From assembly GCA_000388065.2 (NCBI GenBank), contig KB932207.1: a stretch of DNA of 22,652 bases; one strand, written 5' to 3'. The notes below the pieces were generated by a model. The model searched no databases. It was not told the origin of the DNA and worked only from the letters and a program-made list of their open reading frames with translations. The DNA is from Fonticula alba ATCC 38817. Lineage: Eukaryota > Protista > Nucleariida. Positions 18,000-22,625 of the stretch are shown here, piece by piece. The position numbers and the translations under genes are program-made. Position 1 is the stretch's first letter. Each line of letters opens with the position of its first letter.

Positions 18000-20900
18000 G
18001 GGGTTGCCGACTTCGACTCCGACAGGGCCAGTCGAGATCCGCCTCGGAGAGGAGGAAGTATCTGGCAATCGAGCAGGACCGGCGGGGGCGAGGGAGCCGG
18101 CGAAGGGGACCCAAGCACCGGGGCGAAAGCGCCGCCCGAGGTGCCGACCCCATTCCGCTGGACAGCCGACATCAGTGCTTGAGCCGTGGACAGGGACAGC
18201 CAGTTGTTGTCGCCAGAGTGCGAGGCGCGGCCGCCCTTGCCAGCCATGTCTTGGGCCACCAGGTCCAAGAGGAGGCTCATGGTGGAGTCCTTGGCCAGGG
18301 GGCCGGCATTGGCGTCAGCCCTGATGCTCTCATCCGGCGGGGTGATCATCAACATAGCTGGGAGGGTGGGATCCATCCGGGGGAAGGGCACGACAAGGGC
18401 AGGATCTTTATCTGCGCGCGGGCGCGGGCGGAGGGGGGGGGGAGGGGGAGGGCACGAGAGGGAGCGGCAAGAGGAGGCGGCGGAAGCAGGGGGAGGAGGG
18501 AAATCAGTGACCGTGAGCAAGAGCGCCGGTTGTTACACAGAGGAGAGGGGGCAAGGGCCAGGAAGGAAGAAGGCAAGTAGGGAGAGGATGGAAACCAAAG
18601 GAACAAAGCGGAACCCGGGGCAGACGCACCACTAGTCAGCGTTGTCACGAGAGACCCATGAGACGGCAAGGGTATCCCTGCATTGCTGACGCCGTTGCCA
18701 TTGGGGTTCGTGCCAGGAGCACCAGTGCTGGCGCTGTTGTTGCTGTTGCTGTTGCTGTTGCTGTTGTTCTTGTTGCTGTTGCTGTTGCTGCTGCTGATGT
18801 TGCTGATGTTGTCGCCGCCGCTGTTGCTGCTACTACTGCTGCCAATACTAATGCTATTATCGCTGCTGTTGCTCCTGCTGCTGCCGGCGCCACCGCCGTT
18901 GATGACAGTCGGCAGGTCGGGAAGCAGACTGGCCCCATTGCCGGGGGGGCCACCACCCACCACGGACGTCGCCAGGAGGCTGGCCTGTTGCATGGCGGGC
19001 CCCGCGGCAAAGGCGGTGCCGGCTGAGGACAGGAGGCCGCCCACCAGAGAGGCGGCTGTGCCGGTGGAGGCGGCTGTCAAGGCCAGGCCGAAAGAGGGCT
19101 CTGGACCGCCAAGCATGGAGGTAGAGGCGATCGTGGCGCTGGCACCGGGTCCTGAGGAAGACAGGGACCCGAGCTTGGCCTTCGCGGTGGATACCCCCCC
19201 GGTGGCAGACCACATGCCGGGGCCGGCGTCCACCATGAGCAGGTCACCGGCGACAGTGCTGGGCGTGCTGCTGACGCCACTGGCCCCGGGACCGGTCGTG
19301 GCAAAGGCGGCCCCGTCGATCGATGGCCCGGCGGCCATGAACAGGGCATTGGTGACCGGGGCCCCGGCATTGGCCGGGAATGGTGACGGCTGGAGCACGG
19401 CAGGCGCCATGCCCGGGGGGGCAGGACCGCCATTGCCGCTGCCAGTGGCGCCGGCACTCAGCAAAGCCAGGGGGGCGGGAAGCGGGGCGCCGGTCAGCAA
19501 ATCCATCGGGAAGCCGCCCGACGACAGGAGCGCCGTCGAGTGCGGGCCAGCGGATGGCTGCTGCGCCGGCATCGAGGCGCCCACCACCGGCAGGAAGGAC
19601 CCGCCACCGGTCCCGCCACTGGTACCGAGGAGGGCGGTGCCGGCCGGGAGCCGGGACCGGTGATCGGCCGGGCTGCTGTTGTTGCATCTGCCTGGCAGCG
19701 TGGCCGAGAGAAAGCCCTCGGGCTGGCATGGGGCGGGGATTGGGCCTGGCCCGGCGGCGGTCGGAGTCGCGGCCGTGGCCAACGGCCAGATGGCCATGTC
19801 CAGGTCCGGGCCGGGCAGAGCGCCGCCCCGGGTGTCCTCGAAGCCCCGACCATCCGGCCGACCGGGCCAGGGAGCCTTGCGGAAAGACAGGGCACCGGTG
19901 GCCGGGGCGCCAGCAGCACCAAACCCGGAGGCCGAGGGCCCGGCCGACACGGCCGAGGCGCCGGCCACCCCGACTCCCGAGGGGGAGGGAACGCCTGACG
20001 GCATCATGGCCATGGCCGGGGGCTGGCCAAGGGGCAGGCCGCCGGTCAGGCGCTGCAGGGCCGCGTCATTGTCAAACGCCGCGCCAAAGGGCGCCGCGGA
20101 GTGGGGGAACTCCGCGCCCTTGTGGCTCTGAAAGGGGGGGGCGGGGGCACAAGCAGCCGAGGCCGCGACAGGGAGAGGGGGGAAGAGGGAGAGAGAGAGA
20201 GAGAGAGTCATGTCAGCAGCGGGCCGAGAGCAGCATATGGGGGCGGCAGAGTGGATGTGTGTGCGTGGGGGGGGGCGGGCATCCCCGAGCGAAGGGACAA
20301 AAAGGAAGCAGGCAAAGAGGCAGACACGAGGGCAGAGGAGAGGAGGGACGCACGATGCGCGACACAACGCGAAAGACCGCCACCGCCAGGACGTCCCACT
20401 CGAAGACCTTGATGCTTTTGGCAATGGTCCGCGGACGCGGCTCGCCCAGGCGCATGACCAAGTCATAGAGGGAGCTGCTCATTTCCAGCATGGTGGAGTC
20501 GACCGCGGCCGAGGAGGAGGAGGAGGAGGTGGTGGTGGTGGTGGTGGGGGTGGGGGTGGGAGTGGCGGAGGCGGAGGCTGCGGGCCCGGCCGCTGCTGCA
20601 CCGCGGCCCAATGGCCGGCCAGGTCCGGAGAAGCCGGCGCCCGGCGAATCCTCCGGACAGTGGGAGCCGGCGCCGGCCGAGGGGGATGCCGGGCCACTGG
20701 CGCCGGCGCTGGTGCTGGCAGCTCCGCCGGCGTTCGACTCGCCATCCTCAGGATCGAGGGGCTGGTGCGGCCCGCCGGCGGGCCCGCCCGTGCCCGGGTG
20801 CTTTCGACGGTTGGATGCGGTAATGGGGTTGAAGCGCTCGAGCAGGCGCCGGGCGCGGCCCTTCTCGTCCGGCGACAGGAGGGCGCTGGGCCGGAGCGTG

Positions 20901-22625
20901 GACGCGGCCAGCGTGGCCAGGCGCAGAAGGTCGACCGAGGTGACAAAGTACCGGCCAGACTCGCCGTGGTGGATGACCGAGATGACCACCGACGCGGCCA
21001 CCGGCTCCTTGTATGTGGAAAAGGGAGCCACGCGCGGGGCCCCGGGGATGGTGCAACTCAGTAGCAGCCGGACCACCGCGCGAAAGTCCGCATGCATCGG
21101 GCTGGCAAGGATCCCGGCGATGTTGAGCGGCGGGGTGGTCCCCGTGGAAGCCGCGCCGGGGGTGGCCCCCCCGATGCCGGCACCCGTGGGACAGCTGTCC
21201 GGGCTGGCGCGGGTGTCCATGGGCGCCATCGGGCCCAGGCGCAGGCTTGCCTCCTGCTGTGGCGGGAAGAGTGGCGCCGGGGCCGCCAGAGAGGCCGCCT
21301 TGGGCTGGGGAAGAGCTCCGGCAGTGGGGCCGAACTCGGGCTCGGGCTTGACGACAGCCGAGGGCCCCGGGCCCGGGGTGATGGGAGCCGGAGGGGAGCC
21401 AGCGGGCTTGGTGGCGGCCGCCGGATGGGCATCCTTGGATGTGGTGGCGGCGGGAGCCGCGGCGGGAGCGGTGCTGGCGGACGTGGGGATGGTGGTGGGC
21501 GCAGGCGCAGGCGCAGGCGCGGGCGCAGCCGCGGCGGGCCCGGCGATGGACTCGGACTTCGGGGCCTCCCCCGAGGCGGGGGTGTTGGCGTTGGTGCCGT
21601 TCATGGAGAGGAAGAAATTCAGAAGGAGGAAGACATTCGAGCCATCGGGGTCCGAGCCATCCAGAAGACCGGACGATTCGGCGACGGTCGCGGTGTCGGC
21701 GGCCGCGGTGACCGGCGCGCTGCCGGTGGCGGCTTTGGTGTCGGTGTCGGTGTCGGTGTCGGTGGTGCTGCCGGGCTTGGTGTCGAGCGGGTCGATGTCC
21801 ATTGACGAGGCATGGCCGCCGGGGGCAGCGGCGGCGGCGGCGGCAAGACGGGCACGCTTGTTGGTGCCGCTTGGCGGGGAGGTCTGGCTGCTCGAGGGGG
21901 GCGGAGTGTGTTGCTGTGGCTGCGACTGCGACTGCGACTGCGACGGCTGGTGCGGCGCTTGCGGCTGGGCCGCGGGAGAATCGGTGGCGCTGGTGCCGGA
22001 GCCGCCGGGGGCCGGGCGCTTCCGCGTCCCGGAGGAGGTGGGCTCCTTCGCAGCGGCGGGCGGGGTCAGCTTAGATGGGGGGCCGGTGACCGAGGCGGGG
22101 GCTTTGAGGCCGGCTGGGGCGCCGGAGCGGCGGGCTCGAGCTCCGGCCCCGGGGCGCTTGGGGGCCGATGGGGCTGGCCGGTCCACCGGCGGCGTGACAG
22201 TCGACGGGGGAGCGGCCGGGCCGGGGGCCTTGGTGTCCGAGTCGGCGGCCGCATCGGCCAGGTCTGCATCCGGGATCAGGATCTCCGGCAGGATGCGATT
22301 GCCCTCGAGGCGGAAGCGGATCAACCGTCGACTAGACAGGACCTCGGTCGGGGACCAAGGGGGCAGGACATTCAGCAGGGAGGGGGAGCAGCCGAAGAGC
22401 TGCTCCATCTCCGGCGGGTTGGAGTGGATGTGGCTGGGCTGAAGGGCATTGTGCGGGCGCGTGCACGGGGGAGACAGGCAGAGAGGGGGGGCAGAGGGAG
22501 GGAGGGAGGGAGGGAGGGGGGTGTGAGGAGGGAACCGGGCGGGAGCCGGGTGGAAGAGGCGAGAGATGGGCAGGATGATGCAGGGCGGAGGCGTACGCTC
22601 GGCGTGGATGCATCGCTGTCGGGAT
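16071..22625 (-). CDS. Large MedA/ACON-3/Ren1-like (DUF7082-type) putative transcriptional regulator with polyQ and N/S-rich regions; at least 1938 aa, 5' end outside the window
   Basis: Exons 22625-22597, 22438-20354, 20127-18630, 18411-17344 and 17206-16071 all join in phase through GT-AG introns (5816 nt, TAG at 16073-16071). The conserved blocks WSPTEVLSSRRLIRF, VISVIHHGESGRYFVTSVD, EKGRARRLLERFNPITAS and LVMRLGEPRPRTIAKSIKVFEWDVL match the recalled fungal MedA core (W..EE...RRLVQF, ISCI.W....FVTSVD, EKNRIRRNLEGFRPLTVS, IMGFPNPKPRNIEKDVKVFPWKIL). Confidence 0.82.
16311..16628 (-). repeat. Coding CAG/CAA-rich polyglutamine block with QQQL periodicity
   Basis: Encodes QQQQRQQLLQLQQQ...LELELEFLRLDQHQRQLQQLQQLQQL...QQQLQQQLQQQL...QQQ in the last exon of the MedA-like gene. 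Confidence 0.95.
16737..16800 (-). repeat. 30-bp coding tandem repeat, two perfect copies plus a degenerate 15-bp subunit
   Basis: cagggagccagaggacagggagccggtggc occurs twice and encodes GSLATGPLATGSLSSGSLATGSLSSGSLTT. Confidence 0.9.
17927..17998 (-). repeat. Uninterrupted (CAG)23 plus CAA, encoding about 24 Gln
   Basis: Pure ctg triplets at 17930-17998 on the + strand. Confidence 0.93.
18730..18875 (-). repeat. Coding Asn/Ser-rich low-complexity tract
   Basis: Encodes SNSSDNSISIGSSSSSNSGGDNISNISSSNSNSNKNNSNSNSNSNNS. Confidence 0.9.

Follow-up and report, generated by a model that had tools for sequence, protein, structure and literature searches.

A four-exon gene on the minus strand (22408-16071) of a 22,652-nucleotide stretch of contig KB932207.1, the whole of which is referred to here as the window, very likely encodes a member of the MedA/DUF7082 family of 1,918 amino acids (aa), in which the N-terminal domain is broken by two inserts of predicted disorder and yet would fold as one unit. 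MedA is among the few regulators listed by comparative genomics as fungal-specific and tied to the origin of hyphal multicellularity. The presence of a fungal-type MedA domain, split into three pieces within one exon, had been proposed in an earlier sequence-only reading of the window.

The minus-strand open reading frame (ORF) at 22408-20213, which begins with the ATG at 22408 and codes for 731 aa, carries all three conserved pieces of the domain (hereafter blocks) in a single exon. The blocks and the two inserts that separate them are arranged as follows.

22378-22244, minus strand: block 1, aa 11-55; W18-x3-E22-x4-R27-R28-L-I-x-F32, followed by a predicted beta-hairpin (strands 27-35 and 38-46) and a short helix; predicted local distance difference test (pLDDT) 83-91.
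22243-21035, minus strand: insert 1, about aa 56-458, approximately 400 aa; pLDDT below 50.
21034-20789, minus strand: block 2, aa 459-540; VVISVIHH...YFVTSVD...DEKGRARRLLERFNPITAS; predicted strands 473-481, 486-490 and 529-532, helices 491-505 and 513-526; pLDDT 92-96.
20788-20522, minus strand: insert 2, about aa 541-629, approximately 90-105 aa; pLDDT below 50.
20521-20354, minus strand: block 3, aa 630-685; LYDLVMRLGEPRPRTIAKSIKVFEWDVLAVAVFRVVSRI; predicted helices 632-652 and 671-684, strand 665-670; pLDDT 79-93.

The block 1 motif WSPTEVLSSRRLIRF (aa 18-32) is encoded at 22357-22313, and the gaps between the conserved motifs measure 441 aa (F32 to V474) and 110 aa (K536 to L647). The translations given in the sequence-only reading for block 2 (20989-20801, aa 474-536) and block 3 (20470-20354, aa 647-685) are exact and its approximate range for block 1 includes WSPTEVLSSRRLIRF; its description of three blocks in one exon, split by Ala/Pro/Ser/Thr/Gly-rich inserts of about the sizes it gave, is borne out by the composition, the codon model and the donor scan presented below.

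Membership of the family was examined with profile methods. The Pfam model of DUF7082 (PF23305, profile length 155) matches the uncut 731-aa ORF with an E-value of 4.1e-18 and 66 bits, the gathering cutoff being 27. In-silico removal of the inserts followed by a HMMER comparison with DUF7082, a check suggested along with the original proposal, gave 80.6 bits for the concatenated blocks. Blocks 2 and 3 pass the cutoff even when taken singly (33.8 bits at profile positions 53-115 and 34.4 bits at positions 115-154, respectively); block 1 alone is placed at the correct profile positions 12-35 with a score below the cutoff (11.2 bits). The three blocks are thus collinear and the whole domain is represented. 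The concern that standard domain scans could miss such a split domain proved unfounded for Pfam, in which the score of the uncut ORF is over double the gathering cutoff.

Single-sequence searches were marginal for this gene. When exon 1 was compared exhaustively with 1.84 billion representatives by phmmer, 73 weak matches were obtained (best 2.3e-10), all aligned to block 2 and/or block 3, and neither a self-match nor a close relative was found among these representatives. Two word-indexed homology searches, one with the whole exon and the other with the concatenated domain, gave no match because low-complexity words saturated the candidate list and the divergence was too high. Such a near-miss by BLAST-type searches may explain why orthology clustering left the gene out.

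A separate profile of 152 nodes was built from the 73 phmmer relatives and serves as an independent test of block 1, because block 1 had no role in recruiting them. With this profile the ORF reaches 84.9 bits and is matched in three collinear segments, with nodes 6-28 on aa 13-35, nodes 45-109 on aa 467-536 and nodes 109-151 on aa 642-684. The N-terminal sub-profile gives 21.1 bits on the first 60 residues, which include block 1, against a maximum of 8.0 in 20,000 shuffles and of 6.3 in 1,054 other peptides of the window; the same three blocks are recovered by MAFFT alignment. All the 18 columns that are invariant over the protein and 23 relatives are kept (E22, R27, I479, T490, L497, E515, K516, R518, R520, R521, P528, T530, M652, P657, P659, K667, W671 and L674). 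The named relatives are all fungal MedA/DUF7082 proteins, from Fusarium, Neolentinus, Rhizopus, Dichotomocladium, Paraglomus, Piptocephalis, Neoconidiobolus, Smittium and Paraphysoderma, the Rhizopus protein being annotated as 'Putative Developmental regulator medusa'. Identity to the relatives over the domain is 27-36%, about equal over all fungal phyla, and there is no donor-like nearest neighbour. Chance similarity to MedA was considered and rejected; judged by these profile and alignment results, the protein is a real homologue of fungal MedA.

Structure prediction indicates that the blocks belong together. AlphaFold2 was run on the complete exon 1 with the family alignment, and the pLDDT values are 83-91 for aa 11-50, 92-96 for aa 470-535 and 79-93 for aa 640-685, with both inserts below 50. 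An insert-deleted construct of 196 residues (aa 1-56, 459-541 and 629-685) is predicted to form one alpha/beta domain, with a mean pLDDT of 81 and a predicted template modelling score (pTM) of 0.78, so that the AlphaFold check proposed earlier favours folding of the three conserved pieces into one globular domain. In the insert-deleted fold the inserts would therefore occupy two surface loops, where the linkers of the family also vary. The conserved domain of approximately 150 aa would thus lie at the extreme N-terminus, with the inserts looping out at the two variable linkers of the family. For the second beta-strand, the siting by MAFFT at aa 439-444 (MHADFR) was set aside and the AlphaFold placement at aa 38-46 was followed.

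Two hydrophobic stretches occur in insert 1. One of them, the island SNVFLLLNFFLSM (aa 258-270, approximately 21636-21598, minus strand), lies in the middle of the insert at its highest codon score and may be a candidate short linear motif, for example an export or interaction signal. The other orphan stretch, LNIAGILASPMHADFRAVVRLLLSCTIPG (aa 428-458), has no confident AlphaFold placement.

The evolutionary origin of the gene bears on a published assignment. According to Kiss et al. (2019), the MedA family arose at the Blastocladio/Chytridio/Zoopagomycota nodes, alongside hyphae, and the MedA domain is fungal-specific, a view drawn from a data set that had been extended with Fonticula alba (PMC6733946). 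In the collection of papers that was searched, MedA is linked to Fonticula nowhere beyond this statement, and DUF7082 is not mentioned. If the host of the present gene belongs to the nucleariid/Fonticula lineage and received the gene by vertical descent, the origin of the MedA domain would lie at or before the base of Holomycota; the domain and the family would then be older than Fungi, contradicting the fungal-specific assignment. We regard this combination of host and inheritance as a substantial possibility, to be held tentatively. The GC content of the window is 67.3% (runs of N excluded); Fonticula alba is cited as an extreme case with 70.3% (PMC10752896) and Nuclearia thermophila has 44%.

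The alternative that best survives is that the gene is a divergent fungal MedA from a poorly sampled GC-rich fungal lineage and has no bearing on a pre-fungal origin. The fungal identity of all the named domain relatives speaks for it, and so does an IRC3-like SF2 helicase gene (approximately 5100-7440, plus strand), a neighbour of the MedA gene, the best matches of which are mostly from early-diverging fungi. In a neighbour-joining tree of the helicase rooted with the apusomonad Thecamonas, the window falls below all the sampled Holomycota, but only 40 of the 200 bootstraps set it outside the sampled true fungi. However, the helicase core is 34-42% identical to each of the sampled fungal groups (chytrids, Kickxellomycotina, Mucoromycota, Glomeromycota and Zoopagomycota), equally far from Thecamonas and without affinity to any one phylum, and the GC content of the window matches that of Fonticula alba. 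In none of the collections searched was there a self-match of the window's proteins or a close relative, fungal or other, and exact-product look-ups for four of its ORFs gave no record. The GC content and the even distances to the fungal phyla are compatible with a Fonticula-like host but fall short of proof. A fungal host is, on these grounds, judged unlikely, although it deserves more weight than any of the other alternatives discussed below. Fungal contamination of the assembly was rejected; the neighbouring genes have the same composition and are without a close fungal match.

The complete gene, as read from exon 1 to the stop codon, is made up of the following parts.

22408-20354, minus strand: exon 1, 685 codons from the ATG, with the entire MedA/DUF7082 domain and the two inserts.
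20353-20128, minus strand: intron 1, 226 nucleotides (nt), GTGCGT...TTTCAG, C+T 0.77.
20127-18630, minus strand: exon 2, 1,498 nt, Gly/Ala/Ser/Pro-rich, without a recognisable domain.
18629-18412, minus strand: intron 2, 218 nt, GTGCGT...GCGCAG, C+T 0.78.
18411-17344, minus strand: exon 3, 1,068 nt, with poly-Gln runs inside.
17343-17207, minus strand: intron 3, 137 nt, GTATGT...TTGCAG.
17206-16074, minus strand: exon 4, with a Gln-rich, coiled-coil-like tail, followed by the TAG stop at 16073-16071.

The four exons join in frame through GT..AG introns, leaving 5,754 nt open over the four exons and giving the spliced product of 1,918 aa. A codon model was trained on conserved neighbouring genes; with this model the ORF frame is preferred from the ATG to 20354, all frames are negative across 20353-20128 and the coding signal restarts in a new frame at 20127. 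All three frames are likewise negative upstream of the ATG. C-terminal to the domain the product has a 1,230-aa tail rich in Gln, Ser, Gly and Ala, and a Pfam scan of the inserts and of this tail detected no further domain. Codon repeats of CAG/CAA (poly-Gln) and AGC/AAC (Ser/Asn) occur in exons 2-4 at 16312-16628, 17170-17195, 17461-17489, 17928-17998 and 18726-18812, and the final exon has a coiled-coil-like stretch of the (QQL)n type. The CT-rich 5' flank (22409-22652, minus strand) contains a (CCCT)n tract and two upstream ATGs, both short and out of frame, and an acceptor-like TTCAG is seen near 22443, upstream of the exon 1 ATG.

An open frame is weak proof of coding at such a GC content, and the exon character of the inserts was therefore tested four ways. 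At 0.3-1.1 bits per codon, the codon model prefers the frame of the ORF over the greater part of both inserts; the score of insert 2 is weak (-0.2 to 0.4), with no other frame clearly better, and the strongest codon bias is located on the blocks. The G+C content at third codon positions (GC3) is 0.78-0.94 throughout the ORF (0.78-0.88 in insert 1) and drops to 0.64 only beyond aa 676. The only donor-like GT[GA][CA]G[TC] in the ORF is the one at 20353, none being present within the inserts. In base composition the inserts resemble the blocks (G 0.28-0.31, T 0.10-0.11), in contrast to the three introns (G 0.17-0.23, T 0.27-0.28). Both inserts are thus very probably translated as exon, as far as the sequence permits a judgement.

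Several points weigh against the reading of the gene as a co-folding MedA protein of 1,918 aa. Only 244 nt of the window lie upstream of the ATG, and a further 5' exon is therefore possible. In DNA of 67-73% GC, chance alone can produce long open frames, and the antisense strand itself has a 650-aa ORF. The codon signal is about zero in the stretches richest in Pro, Ala and Gly (aa 60-100, 140-180 and 540-600). Some residues conserved in at least 90% of the family are replaced (C478V, N517G, N522L and D665S), and the function may therefore have drifted. To our knowledge, no biochemical mechanism has been established for any MedA protein. Foldseek comparisons of the full-exon and the compact models with the PDB gave no significant neighbour (best E=0.3, template modelling score 0.2 or less), and a sequence search of the PDB gave no match; the fold is therefore silent on mechanism, and DNA binding is neither supported nor refuted by it. 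Scattered Foldseek matches to ADF-H/cofilin were rejected as noise.

The antisense ORF extends over 20490-22442 on the plus strand, and many other long ORFs are seen in all six frames; these are taken as by-products of a GC content of approximately 70% and not as genes. The 650-aa plus-strand ORF was considered as the real gene of this locus and rejected.

It is improbable that the inserts are wholly or partly unrecognised introns and that the mature MedA domain is contiguous or much less split. The chance opening of frames at high GC, of which the antisense ORF is an example, and the near-zero codon scores mentioned above speak in favour of this explanation. The real introns of the gene, however, are of 137-226 nt, begin with GTGCGT or GTATGT and are T-rich and G-poor, whereas the inserts are of 1.2 kb and 0.27 kb, lack such a donor, and have exon-like composition and GC3. 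In addition, the ORF frame scores best over most of both inserts, and they contain in-frame codon repeats.

Translation of the inserts as parts of the MedA protein is therefore retained here, and their make-up points to the manner in which they grew. Insert 1 consists largely of Ala (21%), Pro (18%), Ser (11%), Thr (10%) and Gly (9%), with the in-frame codon microsatellites SQSQSQ, TDTDTD and APAPAP; insert 2 consists of Ala (19%), Gly (18%), Ser (17%), Pro (14%) and Thr (11%), an (ACC)n repeat being the source of its poly-Thr and poly-Ser. Probably, the inserts grew by replication slippage of such codon repeats. The neighbouring IRC3-like helicase has a private N-terminal extension of 140 aa, and its core carries four private inserts of 27-49 aa in comparison with 12 homologues, two of them being rich in Ala, Pro, Gly, Ser and Asp. 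This genome thus has a habit of inserting low-complexity sequence within conserved domains. The MedA inserts are an extreme case of it; they are not by themselves evidence of a new function.

This habit also bears on the possibility that a non-fungal host acquired the gene by horizontal transfer from a fungus, in which case the family would still be of fungal origin. Although the published fungal-specific origin of MedA, based on a data set including Fonticula (PMC6733946), is in line with such a transfer, the gene has the GC content, the codon usage, the intron signals and the low-complexity habit of its host, and its domain is about equally far from all the fungal phyla, with no neighbour resembling a donor. 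Transfer is accordingly judged slightly less probable still than hidden introns. Least probable of all is a decaying relic, in which runaway expansion of low-complexity sequence has broken up the domain and abolished its function, since inserts 15-20 times longer than any linker in 66 relatives and the replacement of some near-invariant residues are outweighed by 5,754 nt of open frame over four exons with clean GT..AG junctions, by the strongest codon bias lying on the blocks, by the retention of 18 of the 18 invariant columns and by the confident AlphaFold prediction for the blocks.

What the protein does may be approached through its fungal relatives. Across fungi, medA mutants are impaired in changing between filamentous growth and budding or sporulating growth, with phenotypes established in Aspergillus, Neurospora, Fusarium, Magnaporthe and Ustilago, and monomorphic yeasts are without the medA gene (PMC6231087). 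In A. fumigatus, a MedA fragment that covers the conserved region (residues 346-557) is both required and sufficient for nuclear localisation and for rescue of the conidiation, adherence and virulence defects; this fragment is without a classical nuclear localisation signal (NLS) or a DNA-binding motif, loss of any of its three basic regions abolishes import, and the authors favour action through protein partners over DNA binding (PMC3503810). The basic patches of the folded domain are kept in the present protein (R27-R28; K516, R518, R520 and R521; R660, K664 and K667). By analogy with the family, we infer that the protein would enter the nucleus through these patches and, as a co-regulator of transcription, would govern a morphological or developmental switch there; contacts with protein partners are a more likely mode of action than sequence-specific DNA binding. 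Both the disordered inserts and the poly-Gln tail could function as interaction, regulatory or trafficking regions. The NLS-like motifs pointed out in the sequence-only reading, RKRP (aa 129) and KRAR (aa 184), do occur in the larger insert as putative signals, but import in A. fumigatus uses basic regions inside the domain instead (PMC3503810).

The significance of the gene depends largely on its host. A bona fide MedA in a lineage that lies outside Fungi, or at their very base, would, if true, shift the origin of the family earlier and provide a testable link between the control of fungal sporulation and aggregative development; the gene would then be a concrete candidate for the regulator of an aggregative fruiting body that evolved independently, a candidate function suggested here only on that premise. 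If the host were an ordinary fungus, the gene would be a curiosity, an extreme low-complexity expansion in a conserved domain. The MedA domain has two loops that tolerate hundreds of inserted residues, which is useful for the design of tags and domain boundaries in work on MedA. As the models have no neighbour among solved structures, an experimental structure of the domain would be new.

Other features of the window were noted in passing. Runs of N that represent scaffold gaps lie at 4169-4623, 9804-9813, 11726-11938, 12709-13354 and 14244-14803, and an acetyl-CoA acetyltransferase (thiolase) gene on the plus strand (approximately 13360-15100) is broken by the last two runs of N. A direct repeat of 206 nt with 83% identity is present at 3963-4168 and 8402-8607; the first copy adjoins the run of N at 4169, and both copies start in long poly-C tracts, with more than 40 consecutive C in 8340-8460. 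The repeat may represent either dispersed repetitive sequence or an artefact of assembly beside the gap. A putative RPN3/PCI-like gene of the 26S proteasome, interrupted by several short CT-rich introns (approximately 520-3871, plus strand), and a possible COMM-domain-like gene (10613-11374, minus strand) were named by eye from the six-frame translation, and an ORF of 119 aa is found at 9891-10250 on the plus strand; exact-product look-ups for the COMM-domain-like gene and the 119-aa ORF gave no record. Scanning the window for tRNAs and Rfam families yielded nothing.

Insertions of low-complexity sequence by slippage within conserved domains are a general phenomenon of compositionally extreme genomes. 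The inserts described here resemble such insertions in being composed of a few amino acids from GC-rich codons, in carrying codon microsatellites and in their position in surface loops; they differ in extent, an insert of 400 aa in a domain of 150 aa being at the far end of the range.

Comparison with the known MedA proteins (MedA of A. nidulans and A. fumigatus, ACON-3 of Neurospora, Ren1 of Fusarium, Acr1 of Magnaporthe and Med1 of Ustilago) reveals the same conserved domain, with its motifs in the same order: W-T/S-x-E...RR-h-h-x-F, then I-S-x-I...Y-F/V-T-S-V-D...E-K-x-R-x-R-R-x-L-E-x-F-x-P-x-T, and finally P-x-P-R-x-I-x-K-x-I-K-V-F-x-W. The basic patches are likewise shared, as are long low-complexity regions beside the domain. 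The differences are in architecture. The domain is at the extreme N-terminus here and in the middle or the C-terminal half in fungal MedA, and the protein, with its 1,918 aa, is longer than most relatives, which have about 130-810 aa. The view that the domain is essentially contiguous in relatives agrees with the linker lengths in 66 full-length family domains, which are 9-28 aa (median 20) between blocks 1 and 2 and 7-23 aa (median 9) between blocks 2 and 3; in place of this compact unit of approximately 150 aa with short linkers, the present gene has linkers of approximately 400-440 aa and 90-110 aa, respectively. Two relatives from Logan assemblies also bear inserts: P0008 has one of 65 aa at the same junction of blocks 2 and 3 (profile nodes 107/111), and P0069 has one of 37 aa near node 80. 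These inserts are single and 2-10 times shorter than those described here, and their sequences indicate that the domain tolerates loop insertions. Short linkers are thus a typical and not a defining feature of the family, and the gene is a variant of a known family with an unusual architecture rather than a new kind of system.

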